From the sequence record MZ444140.1: a stretch of DNA of 64,000 bases; one strand, given 5' to 3'. Each line of letters opens with the position of its first letter. Within the stretch, counting starts at the first letter, position 1. Made by a program: the position numbers and the translations under genes. Under the pieces are notes generated by a model. That model searched no databases, was not told the origin of the DNA, and saw only the letters and a program-made list of their open reading frames with translations. Below are positions 2,560-64,000 of the stretch, in pieces.

Positions 2560-2778
2560 TTACGACTTCAACCATTCTTCTAATGGCGGTAAATACTTCT
2601 CATGCGCCCAGTTAATAATTGTTTCTACAACAGGACCCTGTAATTCAAGGTTACCTGAGATTTCATGTGGTTCATCAATAGATAGAACCCATGTATGTGG
2701 AGCAATGCGTTCAGTTGCTTTGGTTAAATACACATCAGGCATTAACGTTAAATTCAATTGATCGCCGTCAAAATCCGC
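2560..2778 (-). CDS. Non-virion RNA polymerase beta-prime-like subunit, exon 2 (phiKZ gp56.1 equivalent)
   Basis: Frame begins GCG GAT TTT GAC GGC GAT (ADFDGD); joined to exon 1 (...KAPN) it rebuilds the NADFDGD catalytic motif. Confidence 0.9.
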   Translation of the reverse strand, partial: ADFDGDQLNLTLMPDVYLTKATERIAPHTWVLSIDEPHEISGNLELQGPVVETIINWAHEKYLPPLEEWLKS

Positions 2779-4167
2779 CGTTATGTTCAGTATGGGTCGT
2801 TAATCCATACCCGGTAGTATAATTACCACATGATAATTACCACCTGCTGCATGTCGCCATGCAGACCAGACTATATCTTCACCCTTCCTTTCGGAGTAGG
2901 GTGTCTCCCATTTCGAGTCACTTGACTCTACATCCTATTTCTAGGACCGGCGCACCTGATACCGTAATAGTCGTTGAACCTTCTCCTATTCCTAAATGGA
3001 ATGTTACGGAGCTTGGCTGCTGATTGTCCCTACCTAATCTTTTTCAAACCTTGGCTTTGTCTTTCGACTCGCAGTGGTAGATTAGTTTAACAGGATATCC
3101 CAGCAATTAGAGAGAACTCATCCCAATGATTACTCATTGGGGGAACTAGACTTGATTAACTTAATAAGGTATTTATCAAGCACCCCATTCTTTTCAAAGA
3201 TTGCTCTTCGAATAGTATTCGGATGCTTAATACCGACATCTCTTGCAAAGTGTGGAATACTTGGATACACTTTGGTAGTGTTCAAGATGGTGTCAGTTAC
3301 TTCAATTGGAGTGCCTTTTCCATTACTAGGTTTTCCAAATGAGGCTTCAATTTCTTTCTGAGTATATTTAGGGAAATCTTCAGGATTAGCAGTATATGAG
3401 AATACCAGACCATCCATGATTTCCTTACTACCTCTAACTAGATGGTAATAGGCTTTATTACGTTTAGTACCTAGTGCAAGTTCCATTTCTGCTAAGTTAT
3501 GAAACACATGTAATGTCTTAGTCTTATAGTCTAAAACATAAACTGTCTTGGTACTTTCACGATCAGCAATCTTAGTCTCACCGGTAATAAATTCAAATGT
3601 GAATCTATTTCTATACGGCTTAGTCTTATGGTCACGTATAATAACCCAAACCGTATTTTTATTAACTCCTAATACCCGAGCAAGTTCATTCATCGAGTAA
3701 TAAGTAGTCTTTTCACCAGTGGTAACATCAGTTGCAATTACCCGTCTATTTTCTTTTCTTAATCCATTTTTGTAAGCATGCTCAATGTTTTCACCACGAG
3801 TCATCCATTCCAAATTGGATGGTAAGTTATTATGTTTGTTGCCGTCTTTATGATTGACTTCATATGTTGGTCCAGGAGATGGACCATGGAATGCAGTACA
3901 AACTAGAATATGCGCTCCCTTACTTTTTGATGTCTTTTCATCATTTTTTGCACCTATATTGAGATATGTCCCAATTGATGTTTTAGTAAGGAAGAAATTA
4001 CATATTCTATTTAACCGCTTATGACGAATCGTTCCTAAGTTACTAGCCTCATAAGCTGAGTATCCAGGAATATCTCGCCATTCAATTTTAAATGAAGCCG
4101 GATCAAAGACGGACACTACTCCGTTTTGTTCCATTGTCTTTTACCTTATTTGGTTATTCAATTGTCC
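2779..4167 (-). mobile_element. Group I intron (1389 nt) containing a homing endonuclease gene
   Basis: Exon 1 ends in U and intron ends in G; core elements P AATTGCTGGGATATCCT (3108-3092), Q AATCAGCAGCC (3025-3015), R GTTCAACGACTA (2979-2968), S AAGATATAGTCTG (2879-2867). Confidence 0.92.
3130..4134 (-). CDS. Intron-encoded HNH homing endonuclease, NUMOD4-HNH with NUMOD1-like C-terminal repeats (phiKZ gp56 equivalent)
   Basis: WRDIPGYSAYEASNLG (NUMOD4); HILVCTAFHG...VNHKDGNKHNN..NLEW...N (HNH); three Y/F-x-S/N-helix repeats. Confidence 0.92.
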   Translation of the reverse strand: MEQNGVVSVFDPASFKIEWRDIPGYSAYEASNLGTIRHKRLNRICNFFLTKTSIGTYLNIGAKNDEKTSKSKGAHILVCTAFHGPSPGPTYEVNHKDGNKHNNLPSNLEWMTRGENIEHAYKNGLRKENRRVIATDVTTGEKTTYYSMNELARVLGVNKNTVWVIIRDHKTKPYRNRFTFEFITGETKIADRESTKTVYVLDYKTKTLHVFHNLAEMELALGTKRNKAYYHLVRGSKEIMDGLVFSYTANPEDFPKYTQKEIEASFGKPSNGKGTPIEVTDTILNTTKVYPSIPHFARDVGIKHPNTIRRAIFEKNGVLDKYLIKLIKSSSPNE

Positions 4168-5412
4168 ATTAGGCGCTTTAAGGCATAAAACTGACATGCT
4201 GATAGAATTATCATTAATGTCATCTTTTACTTTAGTAATAAAGAACTGCTGCGTAGATCCACGTTGAAGCGTTGGATTTCGGTGAAAAGTACAACCCATC
4301 CCTTTATAAGGGGCTGCTTCTGCAATTAGCTCTTTAAATAGATCTGCAATGATTTGGTTATATTGAAGTACATTCTCATATACAAATGAGAATGCTTCAC
4401 GAGTTGTCATGTTAAACTTTGCTTTTAGTTTATTGGTTAGATGATACTTTAATAATTGACAACCTACCCCCCAAGGGATATGTAGTTCATCATAATCATG
4501 CGGGTCACTAATAGAAGTGATTACTGCACGTGCCGTAGCGTTGAGACGAGCACCAAACATGTGACGCCGAGCAAGACCAGGCTTTTGAGCAATTCGTGAT
4601 TTTGCGTAGATCTCGTAGAACTGGCCATATAGTCTTAGTCCTCGCATAGTCCTATTCTGAGCTTTAATTGGACTAAGTGGTACAGATGATGCATCAATAC
4701 TAGCGAAGGTTAAGGTAGCATCAATTGCTGCTTCAATTGGTTTATCTAAGTAAGTACCAGATGTGGTTGATTCTGCTACGAAACAGAGTTTAGAAGGAAC
4801 TGGTAAATATTTAGGGAATAACTTATCTTTATTCTGAGCAACGAATTGAGCGAATTCGGATTTATTATTAGAGATAATATTTGCATCTAGTAGGAATTGG
4901 AAGATCTCATTGAAATTATCAATGAAGTGATTTAATCCTCTTTCAAATCCTCGATGCAGTAGCCTATCTACTTTCCTGCGTGTTTCCTTAGAACCAATAG
5001 ATTCTACATCGTATCGATAAGAAGTATCAGTTAGATATGCTAAGAAATCGAATTCTTTAGTTACTAGATATCCGGTTAGCATAATGATTAAACGTGGGTT
5101 AATTAGGCTACGTACATGTTTTGGTGTACGAACCCACATTGATGGTTCGATAGGGCGGCTAGAAGTATTGACAACTGGAGTATTACAAATATCACAGATT
5201 ACTCCGAGTTTATGTGCGTCTTCGATTGCTCGACAATCACAGCTTACACTACTTTCAATTGCTTCTGAATCTTGGAAATGAGAATAGAAATGTCTATCAA
5301 ATTCTTCTTTCTCATCTGAGTTACTCGTATTGTAATCATTGGCATAAATTCGTTTACCCGTAAATTGATCATGTACTTCATCATGATCAACAACTTTGGC
5401 ATAAAGACCCAT
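4168..5412 (-). CDS. Non-virion RNA polymerase beta-prime-like subunit, exon 1 (phiKZ gp55 equivalent); spliced product 487 aa
   Basis: Zn-binding CDC...CDIC, FGARLNATARAVI and HRNPTLQRGS motifs; frame ends KAPN at the splice site; the unspliced ORF runs 8 codons into the intron. Confidence 0.9.
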
Positions 5413-5435
5413 ACCAAACTCCTATTTATCGATTA

Positions 5436-5480
5436 ACAAAAAAAGGAGATATAAGCGGCCCCCGAAGGAGCCGCTATATC
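5436..5480 (-). terminator. Intrinsic terminator between chimallin and the RNAP gene
   Basis: GATATAGCGGCTCC-TTCG-GGGGCCGCTTATATC with cUUCGg loop, followed by a U-tract. Confidence 0.85.
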
Positions 5481-5800
5481 AGTTTTTACAATGGACCACC
5501 AACGGAGCCTGGCCCGATCCTAGCGTCGTCTACAAAGCTTAACCTCCGCTCTTCTCTGTAGCGCTCTGACACTAGAACCTTTTACCATCCATTGTAGTTT
5601 TTTGATCACACGTCACCTTTTGAGTAACTCCTTTCGGTTAAGTGATCTATCATCCTCGTGTAGTGATAGGTCGACCTAGACTAAGTCCACTAGTCGATTA
5701 CTTCACGGAACCTACTCCTAACCGTTATCACTGAAGTGAACCGGGTCGCAGTATTAGAATCGGGATGTTACTTATTTAACATCCCTATCTACCGAGGTAT
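5481..5800 (-). ncRNA. Candidate structured non-coding RNA or structured 3' UTR of the chimallin transcript
   Basis: No ORF; higher GC than other intergenic DNA; at least six nested stems including 9-bp 5487-5495/5588-5596 and 8-bp 5762-5769/5778-5785. Confidence 0.6.
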
Positions 5801-5806
5801 TTCCTA

Positions 5807-7687
5807 TTAGTACCAGGTACCCGGTGCGTTATAGGAAGGAGCGCCGTAAGTTTGACCCATGCTGCCAGCCATACCAACTTGTGCACTACCAGAAACAGCC
5901 ATGTTACCCATACCGGTGTAACCAGCGAAGCGCTGTTGACCGAAGTTGGTAATTAGGTTTTCCATGGTTACAGTTACACCAGCTGCTGCTGCTGCGGCAT
6001 CCATTGCGGTGATGAATTTCGGGTTAAAGGTTAGACGACGAGCACGACCAGTATAGGTAACGTTACCTAGGTACATCTTGTCGAAGCCTTTACTGTTATT
6101 CATACGACGCACAATGTGGTCATTACCTACCTGAGTAGCATACCAGGTCTTCCACTCTTGGTCATTACCTTCAGACATGTTCATGGCACCTAGAACGTCG
6201 AGATCACGACGGTCGCTTAGTTCACCATGCTCATCAGTGTAGTGACCGAGGTCTACTTCATGATGGTTGTCAAAGATAATCGGACCAGCTTCAGCTAGAT
6301 TATAGAACTGACGGAAATCAGTGCCGTATAGGTTAGTTAGAGCTTGGAAGATCAGACTAACTGCACGAGCTTGGTTTACGCCACCAGCTGCATCTAGGAC
6401 GACTTGCTCAATAGCTGAGTTGTCGCCCATTGGATCGATATCGATCTGGAATGCAGGGTTCTGGTTAACCATCTTGTTCATTAGCATTACGAAGTTGCTG
6501 TCGTCTGCCATGAATGCTTCGGTGCGAGTTTCAATCGCTTTACCTAGCTCTGAGTAATAACCAAGTGCACCAATATCACGCATCTTGCTAGTAGCGATCT
6601 TCGGCATTAGGGTACGAGCCCATGCCTGGGATGCAGTTGCACGATACGCATTACCGAGTGCGAACAGCCACATTTCTAGAGTCCATGCTTGGATCCAGGA
6701 CGCCTTACGAACGTCAGTAATAACGATGTAAGGAGTGAACTGCGGAGGTAGAACTGCACCAGGTAGAGTTACGCCAAACATGCCTTGTTGCTGGCCAGTG
6801 GTCGGAGTCCAATGTAGATCTACGAATAGACTAACTTGGTTTAGCTGGCTATCGGTATCATAGAACTCGTTCTCAGGTACGTTGGTTTTCTTACCACGGC
6901 TAGTGGAGATGACCAGGTCAGAACGGATCGGATTACCACAGCTATCTTTAACCGGAATACCATTGTAGTCTAGATTGCAGGTAAGCTGTTCGTTTTCTGC
7001 TTTGATGTGGGTCGCAATAGAGAACGGAGTCTCATTGTTACGACGCGCAATAGCATCTTCACAGATATTAACGGATTCAACTAGTAGGTTCTTAACAGCT
7101 AGTTCATCTTTGAAGTCGAAGTCAGCATACACTGCACGGGGACCGGCAGATAGTACTTCTAGACCAGGGATGTTGTAACGGTTCCGTAGGAACTCGCCGA
7201 TCTTGCTCCAGTATTGAGCAGTGAATACATCACGCGGTAGTACCTTCTCTTCAATGATGTCATCAGTTAGACCATTGTTGATTTTGTGGGTACGGGGACG
7301 GATGCGAGTACCAGGTAGGTTATCGAGTACTAGAGTACGAACGAATGCCTTCATGGAACCATTGATATCTTTAGCTAGTTTAACAATGAGTAGACCAGCC
7401 ATACCCACTTGTTGTGCATCGCGATCGAAACGATGGATATCGAAGTCATCAGGTAGGTCCTGATGGCGGATTGCTTCTTCTTTTACTTTAGTGAATACTT
7501 GTAGGGCATCTGCTGAACGAGCATCAGAGCCATCTAGCCGACCAGAGCGACGCATTAGATGGTTAATGCCAGTAGTGGACCCAGGTGCGCCAGCCGGACG
7601 TTGAGCTTGACGTTGTGCAGTGGGTTGCGGAGCCGGAGCGGTAGCTTGAGTTTGAACGGTGCCGATTTCGTTTTCGTTAACAGCCAT
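5807..7687 (-). CDS. chmA: Chimallin, major phage nuclear shell protein (phiKZ gp54 equivalent)
   Basis: 626 aa; N-terminus [14 protein letters not shown] recognised; low-complexity termini; high-expression codon bias; directly upstream of the nvRNAP beta-prime gene as in phiKZ-like phages. Confidence 0.9.
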
Positions 7688-7759
7688 TTTAAATACCTTT
7701 ACGATTATGGTTTCTTGATCAAGAAGAACCTAAGTACTTAGTATACTAGATTCAATTTA

Positions 7760-7783
7760 GTAATATAAATCTCAAATTTTTTT
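7760..7783 (-). promoter_or_regulatory. TATATTAC-type phage promoter for chimallin
   Basis: AAAAAAATTTGAGATTTATATTAC on the minus strand, 73 nt upstream of the ATG; TATATTAC is the published phiKZ early-promoter core. Confidence 0.7.
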
Positions 7784-7840
7784 CATTACAACATAGACGC
7801 TATAATCTGCTATCAGCAGATCGTAACGAACACTATGTTC

Positions 7841-7875
7841 ACTACATATTATTACAATCTGAGTATTATTTATTT
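7841..7875 (-). repeat. 35-bp element identical (inverted) to 63847-63881
   Basis: Reverse complement AAATAAATAATACTCAGATTGTAATAATATGTAGT matches 63847-63881 exactly. Confidence 0.9.
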
Positions 7876-7998
7876 TTCATCTTACAATTTCCATATCTTC
7901 TTTTTTGAGTTTATGGGTATAAAGTTTGAATCCAGAAACTAATTTACGTCAGTCCTGTATTAAATAATAACTATCAGTATTTTTATAAAATGCAGTTA

Positions 7999-8364
7999 TC
8001 ATTTACTTCGCATATACTTACGAACTGTTCCAAAAAGAGAATGATACAGTTTGTATAGTTTACTAACTGGATCAACTTTATTATTATCAGTTGTATCAAA
8101 TTTAGCAATAAATGGTGAATGTGCCGAAGCAGATGTTTCATTTACTTTAACTACACTACCAAATCGATATGCGACTAATACCTTTATTAATTCCTCATGG
8201 AGTTTAGTAGCAGTTGCTAATGGATTGGGATCATTAGGATCTATCTTAATCCTACGCTCGACATTGAAAAAGTTTACTACAATTTCTTTGCTAGTCATGT
8301 ATACAGTAAGATCTTTGTTATTACCTAAATATAGTGGCGGATCTTCAACATTATTTTTAGCCAT
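7999..8364 (-). CDS. Hypothetical protein (gp53 position)
   Basis: 121-aa ORF with GGA RBS and upstream promoter motif at 8406-8430. Confidence 0.7.
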   Translation of the reverse strand: MAKNNVEDPPLYLGNNKDLTVYMTSKEIVVNFFNVERRIKIDPNDPNPLATATKLHEELIKVLVAYRFGSVVKVNETSASAHSPFIAKFDTTDNNKVDPVSKLYKLYHSLFGTVRKYMRSK

Positions 8365-21454: not shown

Positions 21455-21967
21455 TCAGTGCTTAAAAGTAACGATCTCTTCATGAGTTCGTTCTTGATGA
21501 ACAATTAATTCATTAACCACTTTACCAGTATCAGATTTAAATTCGATTACCATCTTATCTCGACACATGTATGTTTGCCAAGTACCACCAGACTTAACAC
21601 AATCAATAATCATGTTAAGTACATTCTTAACTTCAATCTTACTAACTTTATAACGATAAACGTTTAGAAGTTCAGTAAGCCATTTCGTTTTTGGGATTTT
21701 GGCATTTTTACGTTCTTTTGAAATATCAAAAGGAATTAGTGCAATGATCTCACCATCTTTGTTGGTGAATTCAAATACCATTCCTTTTGAGTTAGCTAAA
21801 GGACGAATGTTATAATTACCTTTAACACTGCATACTTCTTCAGATAACTTAACTAACCTATCTAGTTGAACATCAGATGCATGAATGTTATCTTCTTTAA
21901 ATGCTTTCTTTAGTTCATCATGAGTTAGTGGAGTACGTACTAGAGTGTAATCTTTCTGTTCAGTCAT
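21455..21967 (-). CDS. Hypothetical protein upstream of phuZ
   Basis: 170 aa, lysine-rich; two halves each containing an MVxEF motif. Confidence 0.7.
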   Translation of the reverse strand: MTEQKDYTLVRTPLTHDELKKAFKEDNIHASDVQLDRLVKLSEEVCSVKGNYNIRPLANSKGMVFEFTNKDGEIIALIPFDISKERKNAKIPKTKWLTELLNVYRYKVSKIEVKNVLNMIIDCVKSGGTWQTYMCRDKMVIEFKSDTGKVVNELIVHQERTHEEIVTFKH

Positions 21968-47136: not shown

Positions 47137-47739
47137 TTATTCCTGGGTCAATTCCCCAAGACGACCTTCAGCTTTCATACGACGGATCTCTGAAATGGAC
47201 TTACCATACTTTGCCGCAAGTTCCTTGACAGTACCTTCCGGAGCAGGTTTACCCATGTCGCGGAAGTTTTGCTTAGCGATGTCGTAGCGTTGTGCCTGAA
47301 GAGTCTTCAACTCAGAACGAACTAAAGCATTACCAAGGAATTGAGTGAGAATTGGCATCACGAAAGATTTCATCTTATCGCGGTACATGTTGACCCATGC
47401 ACAGTATTCATCTACGTGAATGGATGCGTACTCAGCTACTTTAGTATATTCTAAAAAGCCAACAGCATCCGGGCCTTGATCAACATAGACCATCTTGTTG
47501 AAAAGAGCTATGCCAATGATCGAGGAGCGCTCTGCTTTTATGAAGGCTAGAGTATCTTCGATGATAATCTTTTCCAGGTCCTTGTACTTAACAGGGTCGT
47601 TATTGATCAATGCCAACATGGCATCAACCTTTACAGTCAACTTCATGTCTTCATTACGACAATAGACCAGTTTATTGGTCTGTTCTTGGGTGAACACATG
47701 GTCCACGTTTTGGAAGACTTTCGACAGACGACTATCCAT
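47137..47739 (-). CDS. Protein with a C-terminal helix-turn-helix
   Basis: TVKELAAKYGKSISEIRRMKAEGRL. Confidence 0.65.
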   Translation of the reverse strand: MDSRLSKVFQNVDHVFTQEQTNKLVYCRNEDMKLTVKVDAMLALINNDPVKYKDLEKIIIEDTLAFIKAERSSIIGIALFNKMVYVDQGPDAVGFLEYTKVAEYASIHVDEYCAWVNMYRDKMKSFVMPILTQFLGNALVRSELKTLQAQRYDIAKQNFRDMGKPAPEGTVKELAAKYGKSISEIRRMKAEGRLGELTQE

Positions 47740-47916
47740 TTATTTATCCTCATTTACAGTGAATGCAAACATAGTACATTTCGGCTTAGCGGGATGCTGA
47801 CACCATTTCTCTGAAACTTTACCTTCAGGCTTAGTGAGTCCGTAATAGAACTCACCAACTGCCATCGAGAAGCCGATCAGAATTGCAAGAAAACCTACCA
47901 CTATTTTGGTTTTCAC
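47740..47916 (-). CDS. Unlisted small membrane-anchored protein (58 aa)
   Basis: GTG start overlapping the upstream TGA; N-terminal hydrophobic helix; W-C...C pair; stop abuts the next ATG. Confidence 0.65.
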   Translation of the reverse strand: MKTKIVVGFLAILIGFSMAVGEFYYGLTKPEGKVSEKWCQHPAKPKCTMFAFTVNEDK

Positions 47917-48311
47917 TTAGCGATGATCCGTTGTACGAAATGTTGGAGATTTGCAACCAGCCGATTGAACTCTTCCTCGGTCAGCTGATCACGATGAGAT
48001 TCCAGAAGTACTTCTACCTCTGGAATGACGTTGAGTGAGATATCCAATTGGATCTGCGAGATGAATTCTGCGACATCCAATCCGATATCACGCCTGAGCC
48101 GATTCACCAGCTCGCGATGTTGCTCACTGTTACGGTATTCGGTGATCTTATCGATCAGGATGTCCGAGATACTGTTTTCGATCTGTTGTACTTCGGTCGG
48201 GCCTTCCTCTTTGTAAGTTGCCTTTACTGCCAGAATAGCTGCTACTGCGGTAGAGGTAACAGCAACTACAATGAGACCGAGTCCCAGTGCATTTTCTTTA
48301 ATGAAGTTCAT
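47913..48311 (-). CDS. N-terminally membrane-anchored helical protein
   Basis: LGLGLIVVAVTSTAVAAILAV followed by a soluble helical domain. Confidence 0.7.
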   Translation of the reverse strand: MNFIKENALGLGLIVVAVTSTAVAAILAVKATYKEEGPTEVQQIENSISDILIDKITEYRNSEQHRELVNRLRRDIGLDVAEFISQIQLDISLNVIPEVEVLLESHRDQLTEEEFNRLVANLQHFVQRIIAK

Positions 48312-60633: not shown

Positions 60634-60718
60634 GCCCGAATGGTGAAATTGGTAAACACAGAAGACTTAAAATCTTCCGACTACGGTCTTGTCGGTTCGA
60701 ATCCGACTTCGGGCACCA
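60634..60718 (+). tRNA. tRNA-Leu (UAA)
   Basis: Cloverleaf with long variable arm; anticodon loop CTTAAAA; GTTCGAATC; encoded CCA. Confidence 0.95.
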
Positions 60719-60727
60719 ATTTAAATA

Positions 60728-60803
60728 CGGAGTGTAGCGCAGTTGGTAGCGCACCTGCTTTGGGAGCAGGATGTCGGGAGTTCGAGTCTCCCCACTCCGA
60801 CCA
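60728..60803 (+). tRNA. tRNA-Pro (UGG)
   Basis: 76 nt; CCTGC-TTTGGGA-GCAGG anticodon arm; encoded CCA. Confidence 0.95.
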
Positions 60804-60811
60804 TTTAAATA

Positions 60812-60840
60812 TAAAACCCCTCTGCCATGGAGGGGTTTTA
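60812..60840 (+). terminator. Terminator after the tRNA pair
   Basis: TAAAACCCCTC/GAGGGGTTTTA. Confidence 0.7.
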
Positions 60841-60861
60841 TATTGAATTGAGATAATAGGC

Positions 60862-61083
60862 ATGGATATTGCAACAATGTTTGTTTTAGCGATTCATGTA
60901 GGGTTGTTTGGAATTACATCCATAGAAGAATCGACTATCCAATTTGAAAATAAAGCACAGTGTATTTCGCGTCTAGATATTTTAGAAAACAAGTACCATG
61001 GATACGAGGTACTACGAACAGAGAATACGTTGAAAGTTACTAATCCTGACGAGTATTCTATTTTTATTTTCAAATGCCTTTAA
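60862..61083 (+). CDS. Small protein with a hydrophobic N-terminus
   Basis: 73 aa; signal/TM segment followed by F.....QC motif. Confidence 0.55.
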   Translation: MDIATMFVLAIHVGLFGITSIEESTIQFENKAQCISRLDILENKYHGYEVLRTENTLKVTNPDEYSIFIFKCL

Positions 61084-61179
61084 GAGAAAATTATAGAACA
61101 CCAAGAACAAAAAGCGCTACTAAAAGAACCATTGCAGAAACTTTAAAATCTTACGTTTAGCCCCCGCTTATGTAATGGA

Positions 61180-61380
61180 GTGATAGCTCCTGATTGGATT
61201 CACCTGACCGATGAAGTAACCTTATTCCCAAACGGATTAGATATTATAATCAATGATATTACACGTTGTATCAAATGGGAACTTATCGAGGAGAATGTAA
61301 GTAATATTACTTATGTTGAAGCCATGTTCTTTAATAAAAGTCTTAAAGCAGTTAGGGCATATCTCAAACATACGGAGTAA
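61180..61380 (+). CDS. Small hypothetical protein
   Basis: 66 aa; GTG start with GGAG RBS. Confidence 0.55.
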   Translation: MIAPDWIHLTDEVTLFPNGLDIIINDITRCIKWELIEENVSNITYVEAMFFNKSLKAVRAYLKHTE

Positions 61381-61382
61381 AT

Positions 61383-61730
61383 ATGAACCATCTAACACAA
61401 ACACAGAACGCCGTATATTTCACATTTGTTAGTCCTGAGTTTATGAAACTAACTCTTGTTGAATCATTTGTAGCTATCCACAAGAAACATCCAGAAGTAA
61501 AGCACTGTGTTAAGAAAAAGATTAGTGCTAATGAAACGCAGTTTATCTTTATCTTCAAAGATGGGACTGATAATTTAATCGTCACCCGTAAGACTGAGCC
61601 CTGTCCTGAACTGGATAGTCCAGTAGGTGATATAATTAAGTTGTCTGGTGAAGAACTTAAAAATATTCTCACTAAACATGGTCGCCCTAGTGACAGTAAC
61701 TATTTTAAGCATTGGACAGACCGTCCATGA
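61383..61730 (+). CDS. Hypothetical protein
   Basis: 115 aa with GGAG RBS. Confidence 0.65.
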   Translation: MNHLTQTQNAVYFTFVSPEFMKLTLVESFVAIHKKHPEVKHCVKKKISANETQFIFIFKDGTDNLIVTRKTEPCPELDSPVGDIIKLSGEELKNILTKHGRPSDSNYFKHWTDRP

Positions 61731-61774
61731 TATTATAAAATCCCTATGTATGCCAATATGTAGGTAATGAATTA

Positions 61775-61851
61775 GGGCCTATAGCTCAGTTGGTTAGAGC
61801 AGGCGACTCATAATCGCTTGGTCGCAGGTTCAAGTCCTGCTGGGCCCACCA
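61775..61851 (+). tRNA. tRNA with CAU anticodon, most likely tRNA-Ile2 (lysidine) rather than Met
   Basis: 77 nt; GGCGACTCATAATCGCTTGGTCGC as in E. coli ileX; C4-G69 and C5-G68 pairs. Confidence 0.85.

Positions 61852-63942: not shown

Positions 63943-64000
<58 letters not shown>

Follow-up and report, generated by a model that had tools for sequence, protein, structure and literature searches.

A folded three-domain RNA under selection between the chimallin gene and its terminator in phiKZ-type Pseudomonas phages

We analysed a stretch of 64,000 nucleotides from sequence record MZ444140.1 (the window), which represents a PA7/phiKZ-type phage, and in particular the spacer that separates chmA, the gene for the nuclear shell protein chimallin, from the gene for the beta' subunit of nvRNAP, the homologue of PHIKZ055. 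Between the stop codon of chmA and an intrinsic terminator, this spacer encodes a folded RNA of about 320 nt, which consists of three domains (D1, D2 and D3), has the same sense as chmA, and is under selection. The element constitutes chmA's 3' untranslated region (UTR) and doubles as intercistronic spacer within the chmA-nvRNAP operon. The RNA family is real and previously undescribed; its locus has been glimpsed in the literature, but not described, folded or named.

Selection on the structure is seen in compensatory changes. Of the 94 base pairs in the helices of D1, D2 and D3, 11 have changed on both sides when the three phage genera are compared, while 99-100% of the alignment cells remain paired. 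The both-side changes affect 8/47 pairs in D1, where 98.9% of cells are paired versus 30-43% in slid controls, and 3/47 pairs in D2 and D3 together, where the figure is 423/423 cells versus 29-45% and every one-sided change passes through G-U. In D3, the covarying pairs belong to the closing helix (A-U to G-C) and to the lower arm (U-A to G-C). The covariation score was reached by none of 500 shuffles. The D1 set takes in PhiPA3, aligned by the covariance model itself (alignment A4, which is model-fitted). Compensatory substitutions in independent lineages, above the level of controls, are the property by which a conserved structured RNA is recognized, and they are observed here, in few lineages and with one alignment fitted by a model.

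Covariance models extend the family to more distant phages. The model of D1 (R2) matches the chmA-downstream spacer of PhiPA3 with 47 bits and E 1e-11; in this copy (L003, ~3700-3860) the P3 stem has a wholly different sequence, with a GAAA loop, and arm P4 contains an insertion of ~157 nt. The model of D2 and D3 (R1) matches phiHQ in full (180 bits), and its next best matches, D2 of PhiPA3 and a D2-like junction of Phabio, are both on the sense strand of the chmA-downstream spacer. These two copies of the D2 architecture (PhiPA3, L003 3644-3688; Phabio, L007 4409-4460) have covarying helices. In a manual structural alignment of D2, all three helices covary among phiKZ-type phages, HPP-Temi, PhiPA3, Phabio and 201phi2-1, and the junction nucleotides UUAA, A and GU/UU are constant; the 201phi2-1 sequence (L005 4334-4390) is a possible D2 junction, with a score of 6 bits under R1, which is not significant. 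A descriptor of the D2 junction was not used as evidence, because in AT-rich DNA it is too unspecific, with ~40 background loci in every 0.7 Mb.

When the terminator is left out, the minimum free energy of the sense strand is -105.5 kcal/mol, z = -4.18, and none of 100 shuffles is as good; z becomes -5.45 when the terminator is included, and is -1.28 for the antisense strand. The specificity for the sense strand is due to the many G-U pairs. The PA1C copy has the same asymmetry (z = -2.73, sense, versus -0.32, antisense), and in the PhiPA3 copy the asymmetry is weak (-1.77 versus -1.16).

RNAalifold, applied to eleven aligned copies of the phiKZ and PA1C types, gave the anatomy of the element (a sense position i is 5807-i in window coordinates). 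In D1, helix P1 (CCUCG/CGAGG) encloses three arms: P2-P2a, with the hairpin 5762-5785; P3-P3b, with a UUCA/UUCG loop; and P4-P4a-P4b. D2 consists, in this order, of the GAUCAC/GUGAUC closing helix, UUAA, a CC-GAAA-GG hairpin, a single A, the 6-bp hairpin GUUACU-CAAAA-GGUGAC, GU, and the second strand of the closing helix. D3 is closed by CAAUGGAU/GUCCAUUG, a helix that can extend to 5487-5596, and has a long arm (GGU.CUAGUG / CUACAGAG) with a GGAG loop at its tip and a short arm (GCCAG...UUGGU) with the loop GCUCCG. A kissing contact between CGGAG and CUCCG within D3 is conceivable but conjectural, as both sequences are invariant. Conservation also extends to stretches that are unpaired, namely CUACACG, GAUUCUAAUAC, CACUUAACC, GGUAAAAGG and AGAGCGGAGGUUAAGC. 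In relatives, the terminator has an extended hairpin (AGAUAAGG...CUUCUAUCU in PA1C, AGAUAGGAAUGG... in D6) to which the P2-P2a hairpin (5758-5791, UAGAUAGGG...CCCGAUUCUA) is similar, a likeness which hints that the element may have grown out of a duplicated terminator.

Much of this was anticipated by a preliminary description of the locus, made from the letters alone, which saw here about 320 nt of ORF-less DNA (ORF, open reading frame) with unusually high GC content, tiled by stems and closed by a UUCG terminator. Sense-strand ORFs indeed do not exceed 29 amino acids, and GC content is 0.448 in 5481-5806, compared with 0.373 in the whole window and 0.27 in the spacer upstream of chmA. The terminator is real. 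The seven stems are all true inverted repeats, and five of them are helices of the consensus: 5487-95/5588-96 closes D3, with the nested CUAG and CUACA helices, 5604-09/5642-47 closes D2, with the GAAA loop inside, 5671-79/5690-97 is P4a/b, and 5762-69/5778-85 is P2a. The remaining two, 5647-52/5664-69 and 5701-05/5732-36, compete with supported helices and probably do not form, because the rival helices P1/P4 and P3b carry compensatory changes. That description also proposed to look for covariation among relatives, to compare the fold with shuffled controls and to scan Rfam; the covariation is present, the fold is better than the controls, and the scan gave no family; its central proposal, a structured RNA or 3' element co-transcribed with chmA ahead of the nvRNAP gene, is supported.

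The element is more similar between phages than are the genes that flank it. PA7 and PA1C share 56% nucleotide identity in chmA (49% in the protein) and 64% in the nvRNAP gene, versus 86% in the spacer, and the blastn similarity begins and ends within the spacer (query 24-385). PA1C and PhiPA3 are 68% identical in chmA, 76% in the nvRNAP gene and 61% in the spacer, the PA1C spacer being nearer to phiKZ (86%). The domains have different affinities: D1 of PA7 differs at 2 sites from phiKZ and at 24 from PA1C, and D3 at 12 sites from phiKZ and at 6 from PA1C. In phiHQ, whose flanking genes are 99.8-99.9% identical to PA1C, D2, D3 and the terminator are kept and D1 is replaced by an unrelated segment of ~300 nt. 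Given that the histories of the domains disagree and that D1 has been replaced in phiHQ, the element has been exchanged piecewise between co-infecting genera, and domain-wise mosaicism between Phikzvirus and Pawinskivirus is evident at the level of sequence; the high inter-genus identity is due in part to recent transfer.

The segment that replaces D1 in phiHQ (L004 3200-3514) contains a conserved and apparently structured motif, 'type B', with the core AAAGGUCUGACG...UGACCUGCCAAAGUC...ACUUACGGUGAUGUAA. This motif is also found in the chmA 3' spacer of Psa21 (L006 ~4400-4600) and in an unrelated 171-kb Ralstonia phage, RP13 (L047 2501-2588), where it is directly upstream of tRNA-Leu. An Rfam scan of the phiHQ and Psa21 copies of the motif produced no match.

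A blastn search with the spacer matches 57 phage records, all of Pseudomonas phages and at one place per genome; the element is kept in 54/54 records in which the match spans at least 80% of the spacer. Most of these 57 GenBank relatives have no annotation in the spacer, and a few have hypothetical-protein calls. The succession of chmA and the nvRNAP beta' gene is a conserved synteny, in which the length of the spacer varies: it is 390-540 nt in P. aeruginosa phages, with the element inside, 230 nt in RTH11, and as short as 84-105 nt, with a plain terminator hairpin where the spacer was read, in the four phages Noxifer, D6, Goslar and RAY. Other structured segments or small ORFs fill the spacer in Psa21, 201phi2-1, Phabio and Viktualia. 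The element is absent from a number of genomes that have both chmA and nvRNAP genes, at variance with what a core component of the phage nucleus in Chimalliviridae would require. Because of the short spacers in four nucleus-forming phages and the loss of D1 in phiHQ, the element is, as judged from the genomes compared, an accessory and modular insertion between stop codon and terminator and no universal part of the phage nucleus; the suggestion in the preliminary description that it is a general component of that system is not supported. The small ORFs located between the terminator and the nvRNAP gene are gp106 of 201phi2-1, PHABIO_83 of Phabio and CDS0300 of Viktualia. A different hairpin, GUUGUAAC..GGGAUCGAAAGGUCCC, directly follows the chmA stop in both 201phi2-1 (L005 4259-4295) and Phabio (L007 4253-4290).

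The terminator consists of an extended hairpin, GAUAUAGCGGCUCC-UUCG-GGGGCCGCUUAUAUC (5448-5480), followed by UCC and U7 (5438-5444); a simple terminator scanner missed it because of the 3 nt between the stem and the U-run. The same hairpin and tail, with covarying stems, are found downstream of chmA in PA1C, PhiPA3, 201phi2-1, Psa21, D6, Noxifer and Viktualia. Among the Pseudomonas relatives read, the terminator is seen in all but Phabio, where it is not clear, and this includes relatives devoid of the element. The pattern in relatives is a CUUCGG-type loop, YUAUYUCC, a U-run and GU (sites in L002, L003, L005, L006, L008, L009 and L010), with the covarying stems GCGGCUCC, GCUACUCC, UGGCUCCC and GAGGGGGCC.

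The Shine-Dalgarno sequence and ATG of the nvRNAP gene are less than 30 nt past the terminator, which leaves no promoter space in between. A sigma-70 promoter scan of the spacer was at or below chance, a result irrelevant for phage RNA polymerases. Published data place early and middle transcription start sites (TSSs) at PHIKZ054, as a member of a six-gene operon (PMC8244752), and indicate that it is transcribed in many units (PMC10914365). In the part of a transposon-sequencing study considered here (PMC12676376), orf55 is essential, and the only TSSs named for this locus are those upstream of orf53, chmA and orf59. Given these start sites in that part of the study, and the lack of promoter room past the terminator, gp55 is most simply expressed by read-through. 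The spacer upstream of chmA (window 7700-8100) is very AT-rich, with GC content of 0.265-0.27, and coincides with the published region of early and middle TSSs of PHIKZ054.

In PhiPA3, Enustun et al. observed that enhanced crosslinking and immunoprecipitation (eCLIP) coverage of the protein ChmC peaks between chmA (gp53) and gp54 (PMC11077065), and it is exactly in this spacer that R2 finds the homologous D1. These peaks amount to a hint from the literature on the ChmC pull-down that the preliminary description suggested. Another unannotated locus of ChmC eCLIP peaks in the same study is the gp203-gp204 spacer of PhiPA3 (L052 20482-20610); considered as a relative of the chmA element, it turned out to be unrelated, with one hairpin of 14 bp and another hairpin (z = -3.7).

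We searched the element region with the 4227 models of Rfam 15, including tmRNA, RNase P, SRP, 6S, riboswitches, T-box, ROOL, GOLLD and ribozymes, and found no family: the best scores are 12-19 bits, to be compared with gathering scores of 42-60, with E 1.3-9.8. The preliminary description, which could not match the RNA to tmRNA, RNase P, SRP, 6S or an intron, was right on this, and no other Rfam family matches either. The homologous spacers of PhiPA3, phiHQ, 201phi2-1, Psa21, Phabio and Viktualia have no Rfam match at E <= 1. The group I intron model RF00028 finds nothing in 5300-5950 at E <= 10, and the same library finds a true intron nearby, as well as the tRNAs of the window. ARAGORN predicts no tRNA or tmRNA in the element or in the spacers of 7 relatives, the tRNAs of the window being only at 60.6-61.9 kb. 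Scans of IMG/VR with two RNA patterns and with chimallin returned PA7, PhiPA3 and Psa21 themselves and nothing more. The P2a hairpin pattern has 15 matches in metagenomes and 10 in GTDB genomes, about the number expected by chance and none of them in Pseudomonas; under R2 these fit only in the hairpin by which they were selected, the best being L022 (15 bits, E 0.04). Two further candidates were rejected. A decayed copy of the ORFs inserted at the same junction in 201phi2-1, Phabio and Viktualia is not detected by tblastn (E at least 0.5), and no paralogue elsewhere is detected by blastn, the R1 matches at window 21729-21857 (within an ORF) and at 165-205 kb of PhiPA3 being noise.

Our preferred interpretation, to which we assign an even chance, is that the element is an accessory, recombination-shuffled 3'UTR/intercistronic RNA of chmA that would persist as a terminator-anchored, protein-bound non-coding RNA (ncRNA); it is the persistence and the binding that we infer. 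Transcription from the early and middle promoters of chmA would pass through the element, and most transcripts would stop at the terminator, with a minority reading through to express the essential nvRNAP gene and carrying the element as an intercistronic spacer. The compact 3' domain, together with the terminator hairpin, might outlast the coding part of the mRNA, and the surviving block would accumulate as the protein-bound ncRNA, ChmC being the sole partner for which there are any data. The conserved junctions and loops would work as a binding platform, not via base-pairing to targets. The element may be a host- or competition-related accessory module, in place of which other jumbo phages would have other modules at the same site.

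Several points weigh against this interpretation. The independent covariation events are few, because only three to five lineages exist, and part of the covariation comes from model-fitted alignments. D1 is dispensable in phiHQ and the element is missing from several relatives, hence any function must be non-essential. The ChmC eCLIP coverage could reflect the mere abundance of the chmA 3' end. The locus is not among the ncRNA candidates of phiKZ Grad-seq and differential RNA-seq, both of which sampled 10 min post-infection; the authors of the latter expected phage small RNAs only later. Finally, the high identity between genera could be explained by recent transfer rather than constraint; we argue for selection because pairing is retained in the divergent PhiPA3 copy.

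Some of the same facts would be accommodated by an RNA that acts purely in cis, as a 3' stabiliser or insulator that, together with the terminator, shields the very abundant mRNA of chmA against RNase E and 3'-5' exonucleases and sets the chmA:nvRNAP expression ratio. The element occupies precisely the interval from stop codon to terminator of a gene that is among the earliest and the most expressed, all Pseudomonas relatives read but Phabio keep the terminator, even those without the element, and phages can dispense with a part of the element itself (phiHQ) or with all of it (Noxifer, D6). Such a role, nevertheless, would not need 320 nt, three junction domains and conserved unpaired stretches; the terminator hairpin alone suffices in relatives, and the excess of 22-30 points in identity over the flanking genes suggests a specific partner; we regard this explanation as somewhat unlikely. 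A bolder version of the trans-acting idea, which we consider unlikely, is that the chmA-nvRNAP junction is a hot-spot of interchangeable structured-RNA cassettes (D1, D2, D3, 'type B' and others) traded by co-infecting genera. These would act in trans, within a ribonucleoprotein that contains ChmC and is located at the phage nucleus or close to it, and would adjust interactions that are specific to the host or that set phage against phage. They might, for instance, be a decoy for a defence factor of the host that binds or targets RNA, or provide a scaffold on which mRNA is handled at the shell.

It is improbable that the element serves the nvRNAP gene as a leader of the riboswitch or attenuator type, whose domains would sense a ligand or protein (e.g., nvRNAP or ChmC) and modulate read-through into gp55. 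The order of folded domain, intrinsic terminator, Shine-Dalgarno sequence and essential gene, with no promoter space, is a classical attenuator layout, and gp55 must come from read-through; against it, no riboswitch, T-box or leader of Rfam matches at E <= 10, relatives have the terminator standing alone, and an 8-nt A-rich linker sets D3 apart from it. Inspection of the alignments by eye, with no formal search run, revealed no conserved pairing by which D3 or the linker would engage the 5' arm of the terminator instead; the arm sequence recurs at one place only, a GGCUCC in the loop of the D3 short arm, and this copy is missing from PhiPA3. More improbable still is a selfish or decaying insertion without function, a relic, be it of an intron, a gene or a mobile element, that settled in a permissive spacer and spreads by recombination between co-infecting phages. 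The patchy distribution, the replacement of modules and the mosaicism would fit such a relic, as would the unrelated insertions at the same junction elsewhere (ORFs gp106 and PHABIO_83, the type-B motif) and the group I intron with HNH endonuclease 1.3 kb downstream; yet compensatory and wobble changes maintain the helices across genera, with 99-100% of cells paired, and retention in 54/54 of the long-matching records speaks for maintenance as well. An intron signature is lacking, whereas the true intron nearby scores 85 bits; there is no protein similarity to the ORFs inserted elsewhere, and no terminal repeats were noticed. Finally, the role of a sponge for RsmA/RsmN (the CsrA family), which the preliminary description proposed on account of GGA motifs, several of them thought to be in loops, is very improbable. 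The host, P. aeruginosa, has Rsm proteins and the element has nine GGA motifs, but the number in dinucleotide shuffles is 7.8 +/- 2.0 (p ~0.35, i.e., 35% of shuffles have at least 9), 6/9 are inside helices and only one, in the GGAG loop, is in a hairpin loop, and there is no similarity to RsmY, RsmZ or other Rfam families.

Table 1. Features of the chmA-nvRNAP junction (window coordinates)
Feature	Position	Strand	Basis
chmA (chimallin, 626 aa)	5807..7687	-	Pfam PF25677 Chimallin_Phikzvirus, 1120.6 bits; 99.4% amino acid (aa) identity to PHIKZ054
Domain 1 (D1), four-way junction	5654..5797	-	RNAalifold consensus, compensatory changes, covariance model R2
D1-D2 linker AUGAUA, unpaired in consensus	5648..5653	-	Consensus structure
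Domain 2 (D2), tight three-way junction	5604..5647	-	Consensus, covariation, same architecture in PhiPA3 and Phabio
D2-D3 linker, A-rich, AAAAAACUA; length differs by 1-3 nt between relatives	5595..5603	-	Alignment
Domain 3 (D3), three-way junction	5489..5594	-	Consensus, covariation, retained in phiHQ
D3-terminator linker, 8-nt A-rich, UAAAAACU	5481..5488	-	Sequence
Intrinsic terminator	5438..5480	-	Sequence and fold; same hairpin and tail in relatives
Shine-Dalgarno AGGAG (5419-5423) and ATG (5410-5412) of nvRNAP beta' gene	5410..5423	-	Sequence
nvRNAP beta' subunit gene, exon 1 (PHIKZ055 homologue)	4141..5412	-	PHROG 2987 'RNA polymerase beta subunit', E 5e-167; annotations of relatives

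By blastn, the non-coding spacer (5413-5806, 394 nt) has the same sequence as in Pseudomonas phage PA7 (100% identity), and its identity to phiKZ 47,529-47,922 is 95.7%. The chmA stop codon is TAA (5807-5809), and a second in-frame stop, TAG, comes next, at 5804-5806. The longest sense-strand ORF of the spacer has 29 codons for amino acids; a small-ORF reading was rejected, as there are just two ORFs of 28-29 amino acids, starting with GTG and frameshifted in relatives by indels of 1-3 nt.

Downstream of the element, an intron of ~1.36 kb appears to interrupt the nvRNAP beta' gene, whose exon 2 would be PHIKZ056.1. The core of a group I intron (2847-3167, minus strand; Rfam RF00028, 85.3 bits) is located just downstream of an HNH/NUMOD endonuclease ORF (3130-4134, minus strand). 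In the intron-less PA1C orthologue, residues 7-406 align to window 4156-5358 and residues 402-472 to window 2569-2781 (minus strand) with 87% identity. Goslar has an annotated Intron_gpI at the same end of its nvRNAP beta' gene. The tRNA cluster of the window (60634-61851) comprises Leu-UAA, Pro-UGG and Met-CAU, and a further tRNA (63943-64000) is cut by the window end.

The element is of interest because phiKZ is the model nucleus-forming phage and chmA its earliest essential gene, and because a 320-nt three-junction RNA, conserved between genera beyond the shell protein and kept by compensatory change, is unusual for a lytic phage. It supplies a sequence and structure for the unexplained ChmC eCLIP peak of PhiPA3, and a defined target for the Cas13a and antisense-oligonucleotide genetics established for phiKZ; that Phikzvirus and Pawinskivirus recombine in nature is directly evident from its mosaic history. 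Should ChmC or a host factor bind it, the biology of the phage nucleus would gain an RNA player; if only a stabiliser, it would be a useful expression part for jumbo-phage engineering; and if the junction is indeed a hot-spot of cassettes, these would be the RNA counterpart of accessory 'moron' genes.

As a kind, the element is known, i.e., it is a 3'UTR-embedded phage ncRNA; what is unusual is its size, modularity and traffic between genera. Its location, from a stop codon to the gene's own terminator, on the strand of the gene and with no ORF, is that of 3'UTR-derived phage ncRNAs, represented by 3'UTR_PHIKZ298 of phiKZ, ~100 nt in length (Gerovac 2021, PMC8545117), and by ncRNA1 and ncRNA2 of PAK_P3 (Putzeys 2024, PMC10914365). 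Like these, it has no promoter of its own, would have its 3' end defined by the terminator, and is conserved at the genus level. Unlike these, it is three times larger, has three junction domains instead of two stem-loops, and has been exchanged between genera, and its locus in phiKZ has no reported Northern or cappable-seq evidence.

The other systems that come to mind are more distant. ROOL and GOLLD, large structured ncRNAs frequent in phages and prophages, are also multi-domain and phage-borne, with GNRA loops, conserved junctions and no obvious base-pairing seed, but the element does not match their Rfam models, is smaller (~320 nt), is fixed after one gene, and is known only in Pseudomonas chimalliviruses. 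With riboswitch and T-box attenuators it shares the order of folded RNA, intrinsic terminator, Shine-Dalgarno sequence and an essential gene that depends on read-through; it differs in having no family match and, on inspection by eye, no antiterminator, and in that relatives have a terminator which works in the absence of the element. The CsrA sponges RsmY and RsmZ are, similarly, structured ncRNAs with GGA triplets in a Pseudomonas setting, although in the element the GGA triplets are unenriched and mostly base-paired, and similarity of sequence or structure to these RNAs is lacking. The T7-type intercistronic hairpins cleaved by RNase III are likewise structured RNAs of a phage early operon and, as the element could do, give the upstream message a structured and protective 3' end; these are single hairpins of ~50-60 nt, whereas the element is an assembly of three junction domains with conserved loops.

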